Made by a program: the position numbers and the translations under genes. Below are positions 856 to 43,980 of a stretch of DNA of 64,000 nt, in pieces. The first letter of the stretch is position 1. Each line of letters begins with the position of its first letter. Source of the DNA: Hyaloraphidium curvatum SAG 235-1 (Eukaryota > Fungi > Monoblepharomycota); contig JAIVFI010000029.1 of assembly GCA_025558095.1 (NCBI GenBank), forward strand, positions 530,753 to 594,752. The letters are read 5' to 3'. The notes under the pieces were generated by a model. That model had not been told where the DNA came from and searched no databases. It was given only the letters and a program-made list of their open reading frames with translations.

Positions 856-2629
856 TTACGACTTGTGGAGGCTGCTCGACGAAACCGTCCGGTACACCGT
901 GTCCAGGTGCTTCGATTCCTCGTCCACGAGCGCGAATTCTGGCGGGAATGATCGAATGAGCAGACGAAGAACAAGTCCGGGCGGAAAGAAACCCACCGAT
1001 CACGGCAAACACCTTGACCGTGTCCCACCACTTCTTGGCCTTGCCGTCGTTGCGCTTGGGCGGCAGGTCCTTCTTGTCCGAGCTCCCGCCGCCCGACGTC
1101 GTCCGCGAGTGCCCAAGCGACTTGCGCCGGCCGATCGAGGCCATGAACTGCATCGTGTTGCCGCGCGCGAGGTTGGGAGGATGCCGGTGGCCGAGCAGGT
1201 ACAGCGTGAGGGGTTGGCCGTTGATGTACTTGGACATGTCGACCTGAGAAGACGGAGGAGGTAGATGCCGGGGTCGGGGAGAGGCGGGGGATCGGTCAGG
1301 GCCCGCGTTGACGACAGAACGGACCCAAAACCCACCGAGATCCCCAAGTTGAGATTGTGCGTGTTCAGGTCAACGAAGCTAAAGGCATGACAGGTAATGT
1401 GAGCGACAGGGACCCCGCCGGGGGGCACCGGCGGACCCACGGAGCGTAGATCTCCATGTCGACCACACGGTCCTTCTTGAAGATCACCGAATGCCGGTTC
1501 TCCGAGTCCTTCATCCACTTGCGCCGCGCCTTGCTGTCCGACGTCGAGCATGGCGGCTCCTCGTAGCTGCTGTCGGCAAACAGCAGCCGCGTGTCCTCGA
1601 CCAGGTCGATGTCCGAGTCCTTCGGGGGGACAATCCACTTGCCCAGCGTCGGGTGGGGTTCGTAGGTTTCGGCGGGGGTCATGATGCGGGAAGAGGCGGT
1701 GGGGTATGTGGGGAGGGTGCGCTGAAGCGGAGGGCCGGGATGGGGCGGTCGAGCGGCGGCGGCCTCCTTGGCGGCCGAGTCGTCGTGGTCCGGCTCGCCG
1801 TCCGCCGACGATGCTCCGGGAGGGGCAGCAGGAGGAGGGGTGACGATGATGGCGTTCATCGAAGTTCCCAAGTTGCTGCAGAAGAATGAAGCGTATCAGA
1901 CTCGAGGTGGAGCACGCCTCCAGAGTCGAAACTTGCCTGAGAACCCAGGGCACGTTGACCTCTAGATCCGATTGCAGCGAAGGGTCGATGTAATTGGCGG
2001 CTCTGAGGCCGAAACGATGAGGAAAAGCGAAAGCATGGCCCGGGAACGGACGTACTTCAGCATCAGACTGGTGCCGAACGGCGGGCTGATTTTGCGGTCA
2101 AACACGCCGCCAAAGAAGATCTCTCCCGCGTCCCAGTCCGCCTAAGACAGCGGAAAGATGTGTAAGTTCCGGTTGCAAGAGAGACAGCGGTCGGCCGGCA
2201 TGTTGGCGAACTGTCCGTCGAAACCAGGCCAACAGAGTTCCACGAGAAGGCAGCTCGGTCCAGGTCCAGACCCCAAGCAACTCCCCAACCCTTAGATACG
2301 ACATTCACCTTAAACCTGCCCTGAATGGTGATCGAGAAGCGCCGGTTCCTCCCAGGCTTCTCGAAGTACGGCGTCGTCTTCTGGCAGCCGGCCTCGTCCT
2401 TGCCGATCTCCACGCCAATCTCGGTCGGGCACACGCCAACAAAGTCCTTGACTCGAACCATGATCCGGCCCTCGAATTGGTCCGAGTTGACGTAGGTGGG
2501 CCGGGCGGGGTTGTTCACGAAGGAGGGCAGCAGGTGGTCGGGGTCGGGGCCGATGGAGACGCGGAGCCGCCGTTCGACGGGCGGCGCCTCATCCTTCGCC
2601 TTCTTGCCGCCGAAGCCCAGCCACGACAT
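856..2629 (-). CDS. DUF1769-family protein, multi-exon
   Basis: RLRVSIGPD..VNNPARPTYVNSDQFEGRIMVRVKDF..PYF..RRFSITIQGRFK and KYINGQPL match fungal DUF1769 proteins as I recall them. The last exon EFALVDEE..HKS* ends at 856. Confidence 0.75.
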
Positions 2630-3082
2630 GGCGGCAATAGTTCAGGGGAGAGGGAGGTTCGGGGCGGGGACCGCGGTGACGGTGCGAGGCGACGGGGCCC
2701 GAGCACCGCAGCGGCCGGCCGCTGTTGTCTGCTCGAGCAAGTTCCGCTCGATATCAAGCCCCGAGGCCGCCTCAGGAAGAACGGCGGCCGCGGGAAGGTC
2801 CGGCGCGAGGTGGCGGTGACTCCGGCCGACGCGTTCAAGGCGCGGCGGGGAGCCCGATTCCCTCCTCGACAACGCCTTCAGCGTCCTCCTTCTTCCTCGA
2901 GCAAGCGTCCGTCTGCAACCCTTGCCCCGAAGACGACGGGATGGGGCTCGTTCCGTCAGGGCTGGTCAGGGCACAAGCGGCAGGCGGCAGGCGGCCAAGG
3001 GGCCAAGCATTCGGGTTCCCCAGGCTTTCTATTTCAACACCTCGGTTCTGATCGAGTCGCCATGCTCGCCCCATTTTCTAGA

Positions 3083-5664
3083 TCAAGTAAGCTGGTACTT
3101 GGGTCCCTCGCCTCCCTGCGGAGTCTGCATCCCAACGTTAGTCAGCGCCTGGAGCCAGCCCGACACGCGAGAGACCACGAACCGTCCACTGGATGTCCTG
3201 GTTGGGATCCTTGATATCGCACGTCTTGCAGTGCACGCAGTTGGAGAAGTTGACCTGCCACCTCTTGCCGCTAGGGTGCGTCGACTCGGGGTCGTCGACG
3301 AACTCGTAAACGCCGGCTGTAGTCACAGGGCGGGCCCATCAACAAGGCAGCCATCAAGGACCATGGGTGGGCACCTACCAGGGCAGAATCGGCCCTCAGG
3401 CCCGCCCCACTTCTCGTAGTTGTCCAGGTGCACCTTGGCATTGGTCTTCAGGTGCATCACCTGGTCGTCCTCGTGCCCCGTCCCGCTCCGAGACACCGAT
3501 TCGAGGATGTCGAAGGTCACGACGCCGTCGGGCTTGGGGTAGTCGATCGGCTTGGCGTCCTTGGCCGGGATGAGCGTCGCGTGGTCCGGCTTGGGGTGCT
3601 GGAACGTGAAGGGCACGCGGCCCTTGAGGAAGTACATATCGAGCGCCGACCACACGAAGAAACCGTAGAGGCCGAGGGGGTTGTGGAACGAAGGTTTGAC
3701 GTTGCGCACCGAGTGGAGCTCCTTGTAGAGCCACGAGTCGCGGAACTTTTCGTCGTAGTTGGAGAGCACCACGGGAAGGGGGACGTCGGTGGGGGTCGAC
3801 TCCGTCGAGCCGGCGGGGAAGAGGGTCTCGTACGTGGCCTCGGCAGCCAGCATGCCTGTGAATCGACCGGAAACAATGGTCAGCGGCGCACGCCGCGAAC
3901 CGTCCGCCTGAGACCCACCGCTCTTCATGGCGTTATGGGTGCCCTTGATCTTGGGCATGTTGAGGAATCCAGCCGTGTCGCCGATCAGCGCGCCGCCCGG
4001 GAAGTAGAGCTTCGGCAGGCTCTGGAGCCCGCCCTCGACGAGGGCCCTCGCGCCGTACGAGACCACCTTGCCGCCTTCCAGCATGCTGCGGATCTTGGGG
4101 TGCGACTTGAACCTCTGGAACTCCTTGTACGGGCTCATGTAGGGGTTGGTGTAGTCCAGGCCGACGACGAGGCCGATGGAGCACATGTTGTTCTCAAAGT
4201 GGTAGCACCAGGAGCCGCCGTAGGTGTGCGAGTCCAGCGGGTAGCCGGTGGTGTGCAGGACAAAGCCGAGATCGTGTTTCGCGGGGTCGAGCTCCCAAAC
4301 CTGCAAATCGCGGACCAGATCAGAGACGACCGAAGACAACTCTACACTGGCGGCAACTCGCCTCCTTGATCCCGATTCCGTAGGTCTGGAACTTGCCCTC
4401 CTCACGCAACCCAAACTTGCGGATCAGCTGCTTGGTCAGGCTGCCGTGGCAGCCCTCGGCAAAGAGCGTGACCTTGGCGCGGAATTCCATGCCGCGCGCA
4501 AAGCTGTCCTTGGGCTTGCCGTCCCGGCCGATGCCAACGTCGTTGGTGGCCACGCCGATAACCGAACCGTCTTCGCCGTACAGAATCTGGAGCAAAGACA
4601 TGTGAGCCAACCTGGCCACTCGGTGTGTGCTATAGAGCTCACCTCGCTGCCGGCGAACCCGGGGAAGACCTCGACGCCCACTTCCTCCGCCTTCTCTCCC
4701 AGCCACCGTACCACGTTCCCGAGCGACACAATGTAGTTCTTCCCCGCGTTGTTGAGGATCGGAGGGTGGGGTAGCGGGATGGCGTGCTTCTGGGTGAGGA
4801 ACCAGAACTTGTCCTTCTTGACGAGCGTCTTGACGGGCGAGTCCATCTCGCGCCAGTCGGGAAGGAGCTCGTTCAGGGCGGTAGGCTCGATGACGGCCCC
4901 CGAGAGGATGTGGGCGCCTGGGAAATGGTCGGTTTCAGCGAGGCGACGCGAGAGGGCGCGCGAGCTTGACGCACCGAGCTCCGAGCCCTTCTCCAAGAGG
5001 ACCACACGGATCTCCTTGCCGTTCTCAAAAGCGAGCTGCTTGAGCTTGATGGCAGCGGAAAGGCCAGACTAAACACGGCAATGCGGAATCAGCGTCAGGC
5101 TCGTCCATGACCACGCGGCGACCAATCGCCCCGCAGACGGTGGCAGCGGACATCCATGAAGAAAGTCTAGCAAAAGCCGGCAGATCCAAGCTCCGTTTGT
5201 GCCGGTGCAGCCCCCAGCGGCAGGACGCCGGGATCAGATGGTTCGCCGCGTCCCCGCCCGCGACCCCCCATTTCGAGCCGCCCCACAAGTATCCTGCTGC
5301 CTGCCATCTCCAAAGTTCTACTTACCGGGCCGCCTCCGATGATCAGCACGTCGACCTCGTCCACGAAGCGCTCCTCGTTCAGTGAGTTACTGGAGTCATC
5401 CTCCTCCTCGCCCTCCACGGCCCGCACGGTGGCCGAGGACGAGAAAGACGCCGTCTGCGAGAGCGACGGCAGACGCGCCAGCGGCGACACGGCGGGTGCG
5501 AGGGCCGTCGGTGCCGGTGCCGGCGCCGCGGAGCAAACGCCGCGCGGCCGCATCGCCGACGCGAGGAGTGCCACGGCGGAGCGGCGTGCCGGGACCGGGC
5601 CGGCAGGCACGACGAGCAATGCACGTCGGCATGCAGCAGCGGAGAGGCGCATTGGCGCGGCCAT
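3083..5664 (-). CDS. ETFDH: Mitochondrial ETF-ubiquinone oxidoreductase, multi-exon
   Basis: Arg/Ala-rich presequence; [13 protein letters not shown] motif; [12 protein letters not shown]; [22 protein letters not shown]; [16 protein letters not shown] 4Fe-4S motif; ends [12 protein letters not shown]. Confidence 0.95.
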
Positions 5665-39354: not shown

Positions 39355-41350
39355 CTAGTCCAACACCTCCTCCCCCGGCTCCAGCACCCCCGTCCCGATC
39401 CCCTCCCCCGCCCTTCTCAGCCTCTCCTCCGTCACATCCGCCAGCTCCGCGGTCCCGCTCCCCCTCCTCCCAACGTGCACCGGCGAGTCCAGCGCCTGCC
39501 GCCGGAGCCGCTCCTCCGTCAGTTCGGCGAGATCCGAGACGTTGCTCCCGCGGCGGCCGATGGTCAGCCTGTGCGCGGCGGGGTTGGCCAGGCGCGCGGA
39601 CTGCGGGGATGTGGGCTCGCGGTCGCCCGGGGGCGGGGTGGGCAAGGAGCCCGCGGTGTCGACCGCCGGCCTGCCGGGTGCGGGCTCGGGCTCCGGGCCG
39701 AGGATGTCGTCCGCGTGGCTGACGAGCACCTCGGTCTCGGTCTCGCCGGGGGTCGGGGGACGGTCCCGGCCTTCCCAGACGCGGCGGAGGTACTGTGCGA
39801 GGTGGCGGTCGGTGCCGGTGGAGTGGTTCGTGAACCTGTGCGGGTGCGCATCCAGTCAGCACGGGCGACACGCGGCGCCCGCCGGCAGGGGCGACCCACC
39901 AATCGACGAGGAAGATCTGGATCTGGAACACGTTGAAGGACGGCTCGTGCTCCCCGCTCTCGATCTGCGCCTTCATCAGCAGGAAGTACTCAATGAAGCT
40001 CCTGTGCTCCCGCACGTGCTCGAAGGTGAACGGGTAGCGGTACCGGAGCATGTACCCGTACTCGGTGCCAAAGTGCTCCTTGGCGTACTGCGCCAGAAAC
40101 CCGAGGATGCGCGAGACCGAGGCCGTGTCGCCGTCCTCGACGTGCGGGGCGAGCTCGTTGATGTGGTCCAGCAGGGTGTGGTGCTGCTCGTCCATCTTTT
40201 CCACGCCCAGGACAAACTCCGTGGTCCAGGGGGTGGTCCCCGCCACGAGCTCGCCGGTGGTTTCCCAGGCGCCGCCGGCGAGGGTGCGCTCGCACCGCGC
40301 GACGTAGGCCAGCGCCGCCGGGTCGTCGGGGGCGCGGGAGAGGCATTCCCGGAACAGCGAGAGCGCGTGGTCGACCTCCTTCATGTGGTACAGGCCGACG
40401 CCCTTTTCAAAGGTGCCGCGGGTGGCGATCTTGGCCGAGCGGAGCGGTTCCGGGTCCGTCTCGAAGACCTCGTAGATGCTCTGCGGGTGGGCCTTGCCCT
40501 TGACCCGGAGGCGGTCCATGTACCGCGTAGTGACGCCGGGAGCTTTCCCAAGAGAGTACATCGTGGCCTCCGATACCAGCAGGGGCACGCCGTACACCTT
40601 GGTCGCCGATTCGAGCCGCGAGGCGAAATTGACCGCGTCCGAGACCACCGTGACGTCCTTGCGCGCGCCGCCGCCGATGGTGCCGACGGCAGCCGCGCCG
40701 GTGTTGATTCCGATGCCGATCCGCACGGGTTCGAGGCCCAGCTCCGACCGGCCGACGTTGTAGCGCTGCAGCGCGCGCAGCATGGCGCACCCGGCGGCGA
40801 TGGCGTCGTCCCCGCCCCCGGGGTGCTTCTCCGAGCCGGGGAAGAGCGCCATGATGGCGTCGCCGACGTACTTGTCGACGAACCCGCCGGCGTTCTCGAT
40901 GCAGGGCTCGAGGATCCCCAGCAGCGAGTTGACGAAATCAAAGGTGTCCGCGGGGGTCAGGGACTCGCACGTGGCGGTGAAGTTGCGCACGTCGCAGAAC
41001 ATGACGGTGAGCTTCCGTTCCGCCGAGTCGCCCAGCCTGAGGCCGGTGATGTCGGTTTTGCCCAGCATCTCGACGAACTGCTGCGGGACGAACTCGCGGA
41101 CGGCCCGCTCGAGCCGCCGCGCCCGCTCGGCCGCCAGCCGCTCGCCCGCGCGCGCGGCCTCGATCTCCTCGGCGAGCTTGGCCGCGGCCTCCGCCGACAG
41201 CGGCGCGCCGACCTCCGCGCCGGCCGCCCGCAGCGCCGCGAGCGGGTCGGCGCCGCCGCGCTCCTCCGGCTGCGGCGTGCCCGGCTGCGGCGTGCCCGCG
41301 CGGGACGGCGACCGCCCGAGCGAATTAAACAGCCCGCCGAGGAACGACAT
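39355..41350 (-). CDS. Class III adenylyl cyclase + TPR-like hairpin + hemerythrin domain; intron 39836-39899
   Basis: VMFCDVRNFT, VDKYVGDAIMALF, RIGIGINTG, DVTVVSDAVNFASRLES, VKGK. Then GVEKMDEQH, HFGTE, HVREH and W|FTNHSTGTD hemerythrin ligands. Confidence 0.9.
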
Positions 41351-41904
41351 GGCGCGGAGCGGGGCTGCCGGGTGGCCCTTGTGACTCGTCCCAGGATTCG
41401 CGCCACCTGCGTCATTCGTCACTAGGGACCTCCATCCTCCGCGCCCCACGCCGACGTGACCTCATCCGAAGAAAGTCGGTTTCCCGGTGCCATTGCATCG
41501 GACCGAGACGGGCATTATCGATAGGCGCTCGGACAGGGACCTCGGACGACGGCACGTCGGTCCCCGTGCTCGAGCCGTCCTTTCGCGCCTCGCCGCACCG
41601 CTGCCCGCCGTCCGCCCTTGTGGTCCCCCAAACCAAATCATGTGGACATCTAGTGCCGCTTTGTGCCCTTCCCAGACGGGATCCGCCGATCGACATGCAC
41701 CGTCACCTCGCCTCCCTGCTGAAGCCGCGTATGGGTCAACCTTCCAACGACGACCTCCTCCGAGCACACACGATAAGTCCAAATGAAAACGACATGAGAT
41801 GAACTATTGACCCCAAATGGCTGTACATTGCGAGCCGACGACTTCATGGGCCCGCTTTTGCGTTCCAAGCCTGCTTTCCAAACCCAAGGCCTGCACCCCC
41901 CACC

Positions 41905-42965
41905 TCAAAGCTTGCTGGCCTTTCCCGACGACGACGTGGCACTGGCGGCGATCGGCACCCCCGCCCTCGCCCCCTCCGCCGCGGCCCTCTGCCTCTCGAT
42001 CTCCTTGGGCGTGCGCGACTCGAGCGACGACCAGGCCACCTCGTCGGGCGCCATGAGAATCTGCTGCGGGAAGCCCTGCAGCATGTGCGGCGCGTCGGGC
42101 CTGTCGGCGGGCTGCGGCACGGGCGCGGGGGGCTGCACGTAGGGGGCCGGGTTCTTGAAGCGCGCGAGCTCCTCGTCGCTGATGCCGGCGAGCGTGCGGA
42201 CCTCCTCGTCGATCCACTCCTCGGCGTTGATGTTGCTGCCCGTGGCGACCTCGAGGGCGAGGTTCTCGGGGCCCGCGAAGTAGATCTGGCGTGCCGGGTC
42301 CGGTGAGGACCAAGCGCCCGACGGCAGCGGGCGGGGAAACCCACCGACTGGCACATCCCGTGGTTGATGGGTCCCAGCACCTGGATCCCCCTCGACCTGA
42401 TCCTGTTGCGCATGGCCACCAGCTCCTCCAGCGAATCGACGTTGAGCGCCAGGTGGGCCATGCTCCCCGCCGTCACGTTGCCCGCGGGCGAGACCGCGTG
42501 GGTGACGCCGGGGATGGGCTTGTCCGGGTTGTTCTCGTGCTGCTGGAAGGCGATGCAGCACGAGGGGGAGAGCTCGAGGAAGGCGTGGAAGGTGTTTTCG
42601 ACGCCGTGCATCCTGAGAATGGGGCGGCGGTCAGCAAGATACTCCTGCGCAACGATGTACAAGCGGCTAGAGACGAGAGAACGGGTTCGGGCTTGCCGTT
42701 CGACCCGGGGGCCGACGGTCAGGCGCCTGCCGGACCGGGAGACGCCGCACGGAGTCCGTCTCCCAGTCCCCCCCTCGCCGCCAGACGCCCTGGGACCCCC
42801 GCCCAAAGATGCCAGACGTCTCCCAAGGCCACCGGAACCCCACCAGTAGAGCGCCTTGAGCTTGGCACCGAGGACGTCGGTGAAGAAGGCAATCTGCTCC
42901 TTCACGTTCCGGGTGCCGATTGCGAGGTGGTGCACCCCGTTGGGACGGAGGTTGGGGTTGACCAT
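41905..42965 (-). CDS. VOC/glyoxalase-family metalloprotein ending in PTS1 (SKL), 3 exons
   Basis: GVHHLAI..FFTDVLG, HLALNV, HGMCQS|IYFAGPENLALEV; C-terminus GKASKL*. Confidence 0.85.
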
Positions 42966-43980
42966 GTTTTCCGGCGGCTTCGCAGAGGCGGGGGAGGGTC
43001 TGCCGGGCGCGGGGCGAGGGAGTTCAGGAGCGGAGGGAGCGGGTGAACTTGCTCTCGCCTCCAGCCCCTTGCCCCCGCGCACAGCCGCGGCTTTGCGTGC
43101 GGCCAGGACCTTCCGGACATGCACGCTCTTTCTAGTTTCCGACGAATCCGCTCGCTGGGCAACATATGCCGTTTGGGACGGTAGGGCAGCGCAGCGGTCC
43201 CCCCTGTCCGCGCTGTCTCTCATTCTGGCTGATGCGGTCGGCGGAGCCGCGGTTGCCGCCCCACGACCCGGACGCGCGAGGAGCTGGCGATCGGGATCGG
43301 CTTCAACGTGTCCAGGAGCCCTGAAAGTAGACGGCGCGAGCAACTGAAGGCCGCCGGCGTCCTGAAGCGCCGGCGCCGTCCGTGCTTCCCGCACCGTCCG
43401 TCCTTCCCGCGCACGCCAAACTGCGCCCTGCCCCGCCGCCAAAACCCCTGGCCGTGTACAGCGAGGAAACCGTTCCTTTGGCCGCGAATGATGTATGCTT
43501 GGTGTGCTCGGATTCAGGCCAGCTCCTTGGTGTCGCGATCACTCATGCAGGCACTTGACGGCGCCAGACGGGCTCTGGCGCCGGCGCTTCACCGATGCGA
43601 TCGCGGCGCCAAGGTCGATCGCGTGCCAGCGACGGCGACCTGCGAAACATCCTGTGGGCCCACCGGAGAAGTGGGTCGACTGGCGACAGGGGCCGTCGTC
43701 CGTACGCCTTTCCTTGAAACGCGCGAAAGCAACCAGATCTCTTTCCCAGGCCGCTGCTATGCGGGCCATCCATCCCCCTTGCAGCGCCACTTCAACGCTG
43801 GTGCCAGCATCGGCCCGGCGAGGGATTCAGGAAGAACGCGTTCTGCGGCATCGGCCTCCACCGACGCCGGTCCGTTCCCGTCTGTCCGCCGCCCACGCCT
43901 CCTCGGTCCCGGCTCCACGTCCTCTCCATCTCGCCGCCTGGGGGTCCGGCGCCGATGCCGCGCCCCTCCCATCTTCGATC

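Follow-up and report, generated by a model that had tools for sequence, protein, structure and literature searches.

A predicted class IIIb adenylyl cyclase with a C-terminal bacteriohemerythrin domain in Hyaloraphidium curvatum: a candidate oxygen- or redox-controlled enzyme of bacterial ancestry

Hemerythrin sensors have been reported to control chemotaxis, the synthesis and breakdown of cyclic diguanylate (c-di-GMP) and a P-type ATPase (PMC9388753). The diguanylate cyclase Bhr-DGC is 10-fold more active in the diferrous state, Bhr-HD-GYP is active only when reduced, and both proteins autoxidise fast (PMC9388753). In the hemerythrin surveys and reviews that we consulted (including PMC9388753 and PMC2556348), the partners of the domain are methyl-accepting chemotaxis proteins (MCP), GGDEF, HD-GYP, histidine kinase, CheY and P-type ATPase, and no class III cyclase is among them. 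An oxygen-sensing adenylate cyclase of trypanosomatids, globin-AC (HemAC-Lm), is described in PMC7719234, which cites Sen Santara et al. (2013). Here we describe a gene in a stretch of 64,000 nucleotides from Hyaloraphidium curvatum SAG 235-1 (assembly GCA_025558095.1, contig JAIVFI010000029.1, positions 530,753 to 594,752 of the forward strand), in which a class III nucleotide cyclase is joined to a hemerythrin; the whole stretch is called the window, and positions are counted from its first nucleotide. We take the organism to be a chytrid of the Monoblepharidomycetes, and to our knowledge direct oxygen sensors in fungi are few. In our judgement it is reasonably probable that this is a nuclear chytrid gene for a class IIIb cyclase, connected through a helical linker to a C-terminal bacteriohemerythrin, and that its product serves as an oxygen- or redox-controlled source of cyclic adenosine monophosphate (cAMP).

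The coding region of the cyclase-hemerythrin gene (39355..41350, minus strand) runs from the ATG at 41350 to the stop codon TAG at 39357-39355 and consists of two exons; homologs with 50-59% identity match it from end to end. Exon 1 (39900..41350, minus) comprises 483 codons and two bases of a Trp codon, and exon 2 (39355..39835, minus) holds the last third of hemerythrin helix 4, a tail and the stop codon. The class III (subclass IIIb) catalytic domain occupies residues 109-295 (40466..41026, minus), and the Pfam family PF00211 (Guanylate_cyc) matched residues 113-288 with 62.3 bits (cut-off 21.9). A preliminary description of this DNA, made from its letters, had claimed a class III cyclase with both metal-binding Asp residues, the ATP-specifying Lys, a IIIb-like Thr and the transition-state Asn/Arg pair. 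All six residues were found, namely D120 (FCD), K160 (VDKY), D164 (VGD), T234 (DVT) and N241 with R245 (NFASR); the first five are invariant and R245 is nearly so in an alignment of 44 family sequences. In sequence matches to the PDB they line up with the corresponding residues of CyaB, Cya2 and CyaC, cyclases of solved structure, and all six lie in one chain, as is the case in class III cyclases that work as homodimers. The Lys/Thr pair is a marker of ATP as substrate and of subclass IIIb.

The AlphaFold2 model of exon 1 is confident as one body, with a predicted local distance difference test (pLDDT) score of 88.7 and a predicted template modelling (pTM) score of 0.83. A Foldseek search with this model gave CyaC (1wc1) as the best PDB match (template modelling score, TM, 0.83; root-mean-square deviation 2.3; 32% identity). 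The catalytic domain is preceded by an N-terminal disordered stretch (residues 1-33; 41252..41350, minus; pLDDT < 50) and by a long modelled helix (residues 53-85; 41096..41194, minus), which is probably a dimerising coiled coil or handle. With photoactivated cyclases, the Foldseek alignments span up to about 240 columns, more than the catalytic domain alone would fill, and would appear to take in a handle helix such as those enzymes have. Taken together, sequence and model suggest an adenylyl cyclase of class IIIb that is soluble and probably works as a homodimer.

Class IIIb cyclases such as sAC, CyaC and CyaB1 are regulated by bicarbonate or CO2. It is conceivable that bicarbonate or CO2 is also the main regulator of the window protein and that the hemerythrin is accessory, for example in protecting the enzyme or in buffering O2 locally, given that Lys160 and Thr234 form the class IIIb signature, that the top structural match is the bicarbonate-responsive CyaC, and that the nearest sequence relatives lacking a hemerythrin are cyanobacterial GAF/PAS cyclases. 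We regard this as unlikely, since the fusion is kept in hundreds of bacterial proteins and in five eukaryotic genes and the iron ligands are kept in the clade of the window copy, which points to functional coupling; besides, both modes of regulation could coexist.

The hemerythrin domain itself is split between the two exons. The exon 1 part (39900..40228, minus) encodes helices 1-3 and the first part of helix 4 with the ligands H390, H426, E430, H445 and H449, and the exon 2 part (39775..39835, minus) encodes the rest of helix 4 with a His (39825-39823) and an Asp (39810-39808). The set of seven di-iron ligands (H; HxxxE; HxxxH; HxxxxD) is thus complete, as the preliminary description had stated. 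The Pfam Hemerythrin family matched residues 382-467 in the unspliced frame of exon 1, and TIGR02481 scored 68.6 bits (cut-off 51.75) on the same exon. For the NCBI protein P0002, which contains the spliced sequence, the scores were 87.9 bits with TIGR02481 and 31.1 bits with PF01814 (cut-off 25.3). The hemerythrin of P0002 aligned with DcrH-Hr at E 4e-15 with 7/7 ligand positions matched, and the predicted structure of P0002 shows the four hemerythrin helices (its residues 121-142, 146-173, 179-202 and 207-241) with pLDDT > 90. Elsewhere in the family the site is more variable: in 14 of the 44 members Q, S, V, Y, A or D stands in place of the first His of HxxxE, while the clade of the window copy keeps His, and some of the bacterial proteins may have lost the ability to bind two irons.

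The two exons were searched separately, and the evidence on their junction was taken from P0002. The intron (39836..39899, minus) is spliceosomal, 64 nt long and of the GT-AG type (GTGGGT...CTGAC...CAG, with CTGAC as branch motif), and it interrupts in phase 2 the Trp codon of DWF, between DW and F. The spliced junction reads DW followed by FTNHSTGTDRHL, and intron-less bacterial homologs have DWFANHSTGTDRHL at the same place. The bacteriohemerythrin model NF033749 gave 72.7 bits with exon 1 alone, under its cut-off of 84, the match ending at profile position 107 (3-107); with the spliced protein P0002 it gave 91.3 bits and covered positions 3-128 of 129. In the predicted structure of P0002, helix 4 is continuous across the exon junction (pLDDT > 90). 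The earlier proposals that the gene bears an intron and that its removal restores the last ligand pair are therefore borne out, as exon 2 supplies the His and the Asp, and the junction agrees with the homologs, with the family score and with P0002, whose junction is that of the window gene. Intron removal as drawn here is supported on this basis. The length of the frame is weak evidence at this locus, since the opposite strand of the same stretch holds an open reading frame (ORF) of 627 amino acids at a guanine plus cytosine (GC) content of about 68%, and the case is one of homology. A seven-codon upstream ORF (41412-41435, minus; ATG...TGA) lies in another frame 62 nt before the start codon.

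Cyclase and hemerythrin are connected by a three-helix linker (residues 301-357; 40280..40450, minus) which resembles TPR only weakly. Of the TPR-like hairpin that the preliminary description had placed here, the helices are present in the model, but the TPR profiles stayed under their cut-offs, with 15.1 bits for TPR_2 (cut-off 27) and 14.9-17 bits for TPR_14 (cut-off 23.5). By analogy with Bhr-DGC and DcrH, we infer that cAMP synthesis is gated by O2 or redox state through this linker. The di-iron centre would react with O2 or other oxidants and change between the diferrous and the diferric form, and the redox change would be relayed by the linker to the cyclase dimer, setting the rate of cAMP synthesis. 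If the enzyme were more active when reduced, like the characterised hemerythrin-coupled enzymes, cAMP would rise at low oxygen. The hosts of the bacterial relatives, microaerophilic iron oxidisers and anaerobes, are consistent with an oxygen or redox signal.

The hemerythrin-like domain of mammalian FBXL5 folds only with iron and O2. In a similar manner, the hemerythrin of the window protein might report iron supply or control protein stability, so that cAMP would follow the amount of protein and not its redox state. The seven ligands prove only a likely di-iron site, the loss of the first HxxxE His in 14/44 sequences indicates that this site is unequally constrained across lineages, and the long disordered tail could hold signals for degradation or phosphorylation. 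Nevertheless, the closest characterised relatives of the domain are bacterial sensor hemerythrins (DcrH-Hr, E 4e-15), which act via redox or ligand state, and the high pTM (0.83) indicates that hemerythrin, linker and cyclase are packed in a fixed arrangement, which is what allostery would lead one to expect. This alternative appears improbable to us.

The same combination of domains is widespread in bacteria. About 45 proteins that combine these two domains came up in a word search, with identities of 38-59%, and those with a named source are all bacterial, from a Deltaproteobacteria metagenome-assembled genome (MAG), Anaeromyxobacter and Rhodocyclaceae. In a scan of species-representative genomes, full-length members were found in about 32 genomes, among them Gallionellaceae (Gallionella), Sideroxydans, Sterolibacterium, Sulfuritalea, Rhodocyclales, Syntrophaceae, Syntrophorhabdaceae, one Bacteroidota and one Spirochaete. 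Many of these hosts are microaerophilic iron oxidisers (Gallionella, Sideroxydans) or anaerobes (Syntrophaceae and relatives). Three clusters of the same architecture in the ESM Atlas, with 51, 149 and 132 members, are 98-100% bacterial.

In addition to the window gene, a profile scan of the Hyaloraphidium genome with both Pfam families revealed two more loci in which a cyclase is followed by a hemerythrin on the same strand. Both paralogs are intact genes with all key residues and a single intron each, at differing positions. The C23 paralog (L004, G000:C23:643000-648000; gene 1505..3088, plus strand) has an intron of 63 nt (2859-2921), five bases downstream of the intron site of the window gene; BVMO-like ORFs come next to it on the other strand. 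The C36 paralog (L003, G000:C36:472000-477000; gene about 3611..1879, minus strand) is the copy closest to the bacterial sequences; its intron of 62 nt (2523-2584) falls in the helical linker, after FEEAVA and before WYHMKE. The three Hyaloraphidium introns are of one type (GT[AG][AG]GT...CTGAC...YAG). Two further orthologs were found on Logan contigs: L001 (6001-7524; run SRR23967301, GC 56%), which has no intron, and L002 (2172-3946; run SRR26194948, GC 53.5%), whose hemerythrin is interrupted by an intron of about 150 nt, at a fourth position. The neighbour of the L001 cyclase gene encodes a DUR3-like transporter whose best named matches are Cladochytrium replicatum (68%), then Nowakowskiella and Spizellomyces, and we therefore assign L001 and L002 to chytrid fungi. 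No synteny was found between the window and L001 or L002, which are syntenic with each other only. The five eukaryotic copies thus show four different intron positions, with one copy intron-less. After the hemerythrin the eukaryotic copies have in common a short extension, YL+R+W-GR, without counterpart in bacteria.

The phylogeny is based on a quick tree of 88 rows and a careful tree of 28 rows. Four of the eukaryotic copies form a clade with support of 100/99, and all five group with only 72/62. The eukaryotic clade lies within a 100/100 clade together with the bacterial proteins P0003, P0004, P0005, P0007 and P0010, which in turn is sister to an Anaeromyxobacter-type clade. The surroundings of two of these five bacterial members, P0004 and P0005, were looked at, and both are set in compact neighbourhoods of bacterial genes. 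The idea of a bacterial-derived gene, put forward in the preliminary description, is upheld by this nesting within a bacterial clade of the same architecture. An acquisition of the already fused gene from bacteria is supported by the sequence comparison, and the architecture is not a eukaryotic invention. The donor was most likely of the Myxococcota/Deltaproteobacteria type, and the simplest reading is one transfer into chytrids, followed by duplication and independent intron gain. A single origin of the five eukaryotic copies is favoured, not proven, because C36 is placed with weak support. A bacterial source of fungal hemerythrins has previously been suggested by Bailly et al. (PMC2556348). 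Next to the closest bacterial homolog, 17 nt upstream of P0004, there is a SnoaL_4 gene (L085, 5526-5984, plus strand). Its co-transfer was considered and rejected, as a search of the Hyaloraphidium genome with the bacterial SnoaL_4 gave no match.

Since the nearest relatives are bacterial and the GC content resembles that of Myxococcota, the gene could in principle stem from bacterial contamination or misassembly. The chance of this is in our view negligible: the complete gene requires a spliceosomal intron, the window forms the final 64 kb of a contig of 595 kb, which belongs to an assembly of 32 Mb and 55 contigs, and paralogs with the same intron type at different sites are present on two other contigs. 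Moreover, the flanking gene is apparently interrupted by an intron too, and the eukaryotic copies share the YL+R+W-GR extension that bacteria do not have. Residence in a eukaryotic genome is thus supported by the size of the contig, by spliceosomal introns of one type in all three paralogs and by the neighbour's intron-interrupted appearance.

The tail of the window protein is a disordered Pro-rich stretch (39358..39774, minus; pLDDT < 50 over most of P0002 residues 259-380). These approximately 135 disordered residues occur only in the window copy, and the bacterial homologs stop soon after the hemerythrin. The tail contains two 28-residue repeats, identical at 14 of the 28 positions, each with an RRGS (39555-39544 and 39468-39457, minus), and behind each RRGS a short helix (...TEERLRR) is predicted. 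The RRGS motifs may be sites of the protein kinase A (PKA) type with a possible role in feedback, although feedback phosphorylation is a guess made from sequence motifs. The protein encoded by L001 ends with TLRRASIIPRN, in which LRRASI is a Kemptide-like PKA site. In the proposed mechanism, cAMP would feed the organism's own proteins that bind cyclic nucleotide monophosphates (cNMP) and its phosphodiesterases, and a PKA-like kinase might act back on the enzyme through the two RRGS sites. The genome contains cNMP-binding proteins at at least six loci and class I phosphodiesterases at three loci, and therefore downstream targets for cAMP are available. It is the presence of these genes and of the RRGS sites that suggests a wiring of the enzyme into cAMP signalling.

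Several points weigh against the proposed function. The NCBI model of the gene, P0002, has 380 residues and the name "hemerythrin-like protein [Hyaloraphidium curvatum]"; a comparison of lengths puts its start at Met264 of the full protein, inside the cyclase domain, and the cyclase is left out. The evidence for splicing and for transcription of the cyclase half consists of homology and of the NCBI model. The window copy has an end branch of 0.62-0.75, evolving faster than its relatives, and it deviates at 8 of 93 well-conserved columns, none of which is catalytic. The hemerythrin is N-terminal in Bhr-DGC as well as in Bhr-HD-GYP, so that the direction and the sign of regulation proposed here are guesses. 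In the literature accessible to our search we found no assay of any family member, bacterial or fungal, and no report of a fusion of hemerythrin to a class III cyclase or of a coupling of hemerythrin to cAMP synthesis.

If the NCBI model were right, only a hemerythrin-like protein of 380 residues would be made, and the cyclase stretch would be untranslated or a decaying remnant. This would agree with the public annotation, with the chance occurrence of long ORFs that is expected at 68% GC, and with the branch of the window copy, which is the longest among its relatives. However, all 42 of the 42 family-invariant columns and the six catalytic residues are intact, and the 483 residues of exon 1 are 50-59% identical to homologs along the cyclase; the 263 residues ahead of Met264 reach the same identity and include every catalytic residue. 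Met264 corresponds to Leu in the homologs and lies within the domain, so that P0002 begins with two orphan strands, whereas the N-terminal MSFL of the full protein resembles the MNFL of the chytrid ortholog P0001. We consider the short product very unlikely, and judging from these comparisons the Met264 start of P0002 is almost certainly wrong. Because the NCBI model begins at Met264, the public annotation hides the fusion; with such a database error, a search by domain architecture would miss the window protein.

Upstream of the gene lies a neighbour of the glyoxalase/VOC family (41844-43442, minus), the frame of which breaks midway in a way that looks like an intron. Further class III cyclases and hemerythrins are encoded elsewhere in the genome. 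At least 13 hemerythrin matches were counted in Hyaloraphidium, and an open frame of 889 amino acids (G000:C32:96561-98129, minus strand) contains three consecutive hemerythrin domains. A pair of strong class III cyclase domains stands side by side at G000:C13:120805-123101 (plus strand), and three weaker ones form a cluster at C27:253736-256355 (plus strand).

The architecture is common, though unstudied, in bacteria, and the new part is its presence, expansion and remodelling in chytrid fungi. The chances seem to us evenly balanced that the window protein represents the first hemerythrin-gated class III cyclase anywhere and the first eukaryotic non-haem-iron O2 or redox sensor for cAMP, derived from Myxococcota-like bacteria, duplicated, with one intron per copy and a feedback tail with PKA sites. 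If this were true, early-diverging fungi would sense oxygen through cAMP. With its varied introns, eukaryote-only extension and lineage-specific tail, the locus is a clear example of how a eukaryote has domesticated a bacterial signalling gene. As the enzyme is predicted to be soluble, single-chain and of bacterial type, its expression and assay should be easy, and the question is directly testable.

Among known systems, the bacterial cyclase-hemerythrins (P0004 from a Deltaproteobacteria MAG, P0006 from Anaeromyxobacter sp., and those of Gallionellaceae, Rhodocyclales and Syntrophaceae) have the same order of parts, from a helix through the class IIIb cyclase and the helical linker to the bacteriohemerythrin. 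Their full-length identity to the window protein is 38-55%, the catalytic and ligand residues agree, and the proteins have been named by automatic annotation only, as 'bacteriohemerythrin' or 'guanylate cyclase'. In contrast to the window gene, they have no intron, no Pro-rich RRGS tail and no YL+R+W-GR extension. Cyr1 is likewise a class III domain in fungi, but it has RA, LRR and PP2C domains, whereas the window protein starts about 110 residues before its cyclase domain and showed no RA, LRR or PP2C match in Pfam, so that the contrast with the LRR-PP2C architecture of Cyr1 drawn in the preliminary description holds. With the one query used, no PP2C was seen beside any cyclase-domain locus of the genome, which does not establish its absence. 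Spirulina platensis CyaC and mammalian sAC have the same Lys/Thr pair and the homodimer-type set of residues; they differ in lacking a hemerythrin and in being under the control of bicarbonate or of other domains.

The trypanosomatid globin-AC resembles the window protein in being a eukaryotic soluble class III cyclase with an O2-binding domain, and the proposed logic is the same. Its sensor, however, is an N-terminal haem globin and not a C-terminal non-haem di-iron hemerythrin; the window protein gave no globin match in Pfam, and with an unrelated origin the two would be functional analogues only. Desulfovibrio vulgaris DcrH provides the best match to a hemerythrin of solved structure, and the domain is C-terminal in both proteins, but DcrH is a membrane chemoreceptor without enzymatic output. 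Vibrio cholerae Bhr-DGC and Ferrovum Bhr-HD-GYP likewise combine a bacteriohemerythrin with the full set of ligands and a dimeric second-messenger enzyme, the activity of which is set by the redox state (PMC9388753). The window protein differs from both in that its output domain is a class III cyclase instead of GGDEF or HD-GYP, in that its hemerythrin is C-terminal instead of N-terminal, and in its eukaryotic host. By its sequence, the window gene belongs to the class III (IIIb) cyclases and to the bacteriohemerythrins, and by analogy its product probably works like Bhr-DGC, but with cAMP as the output.

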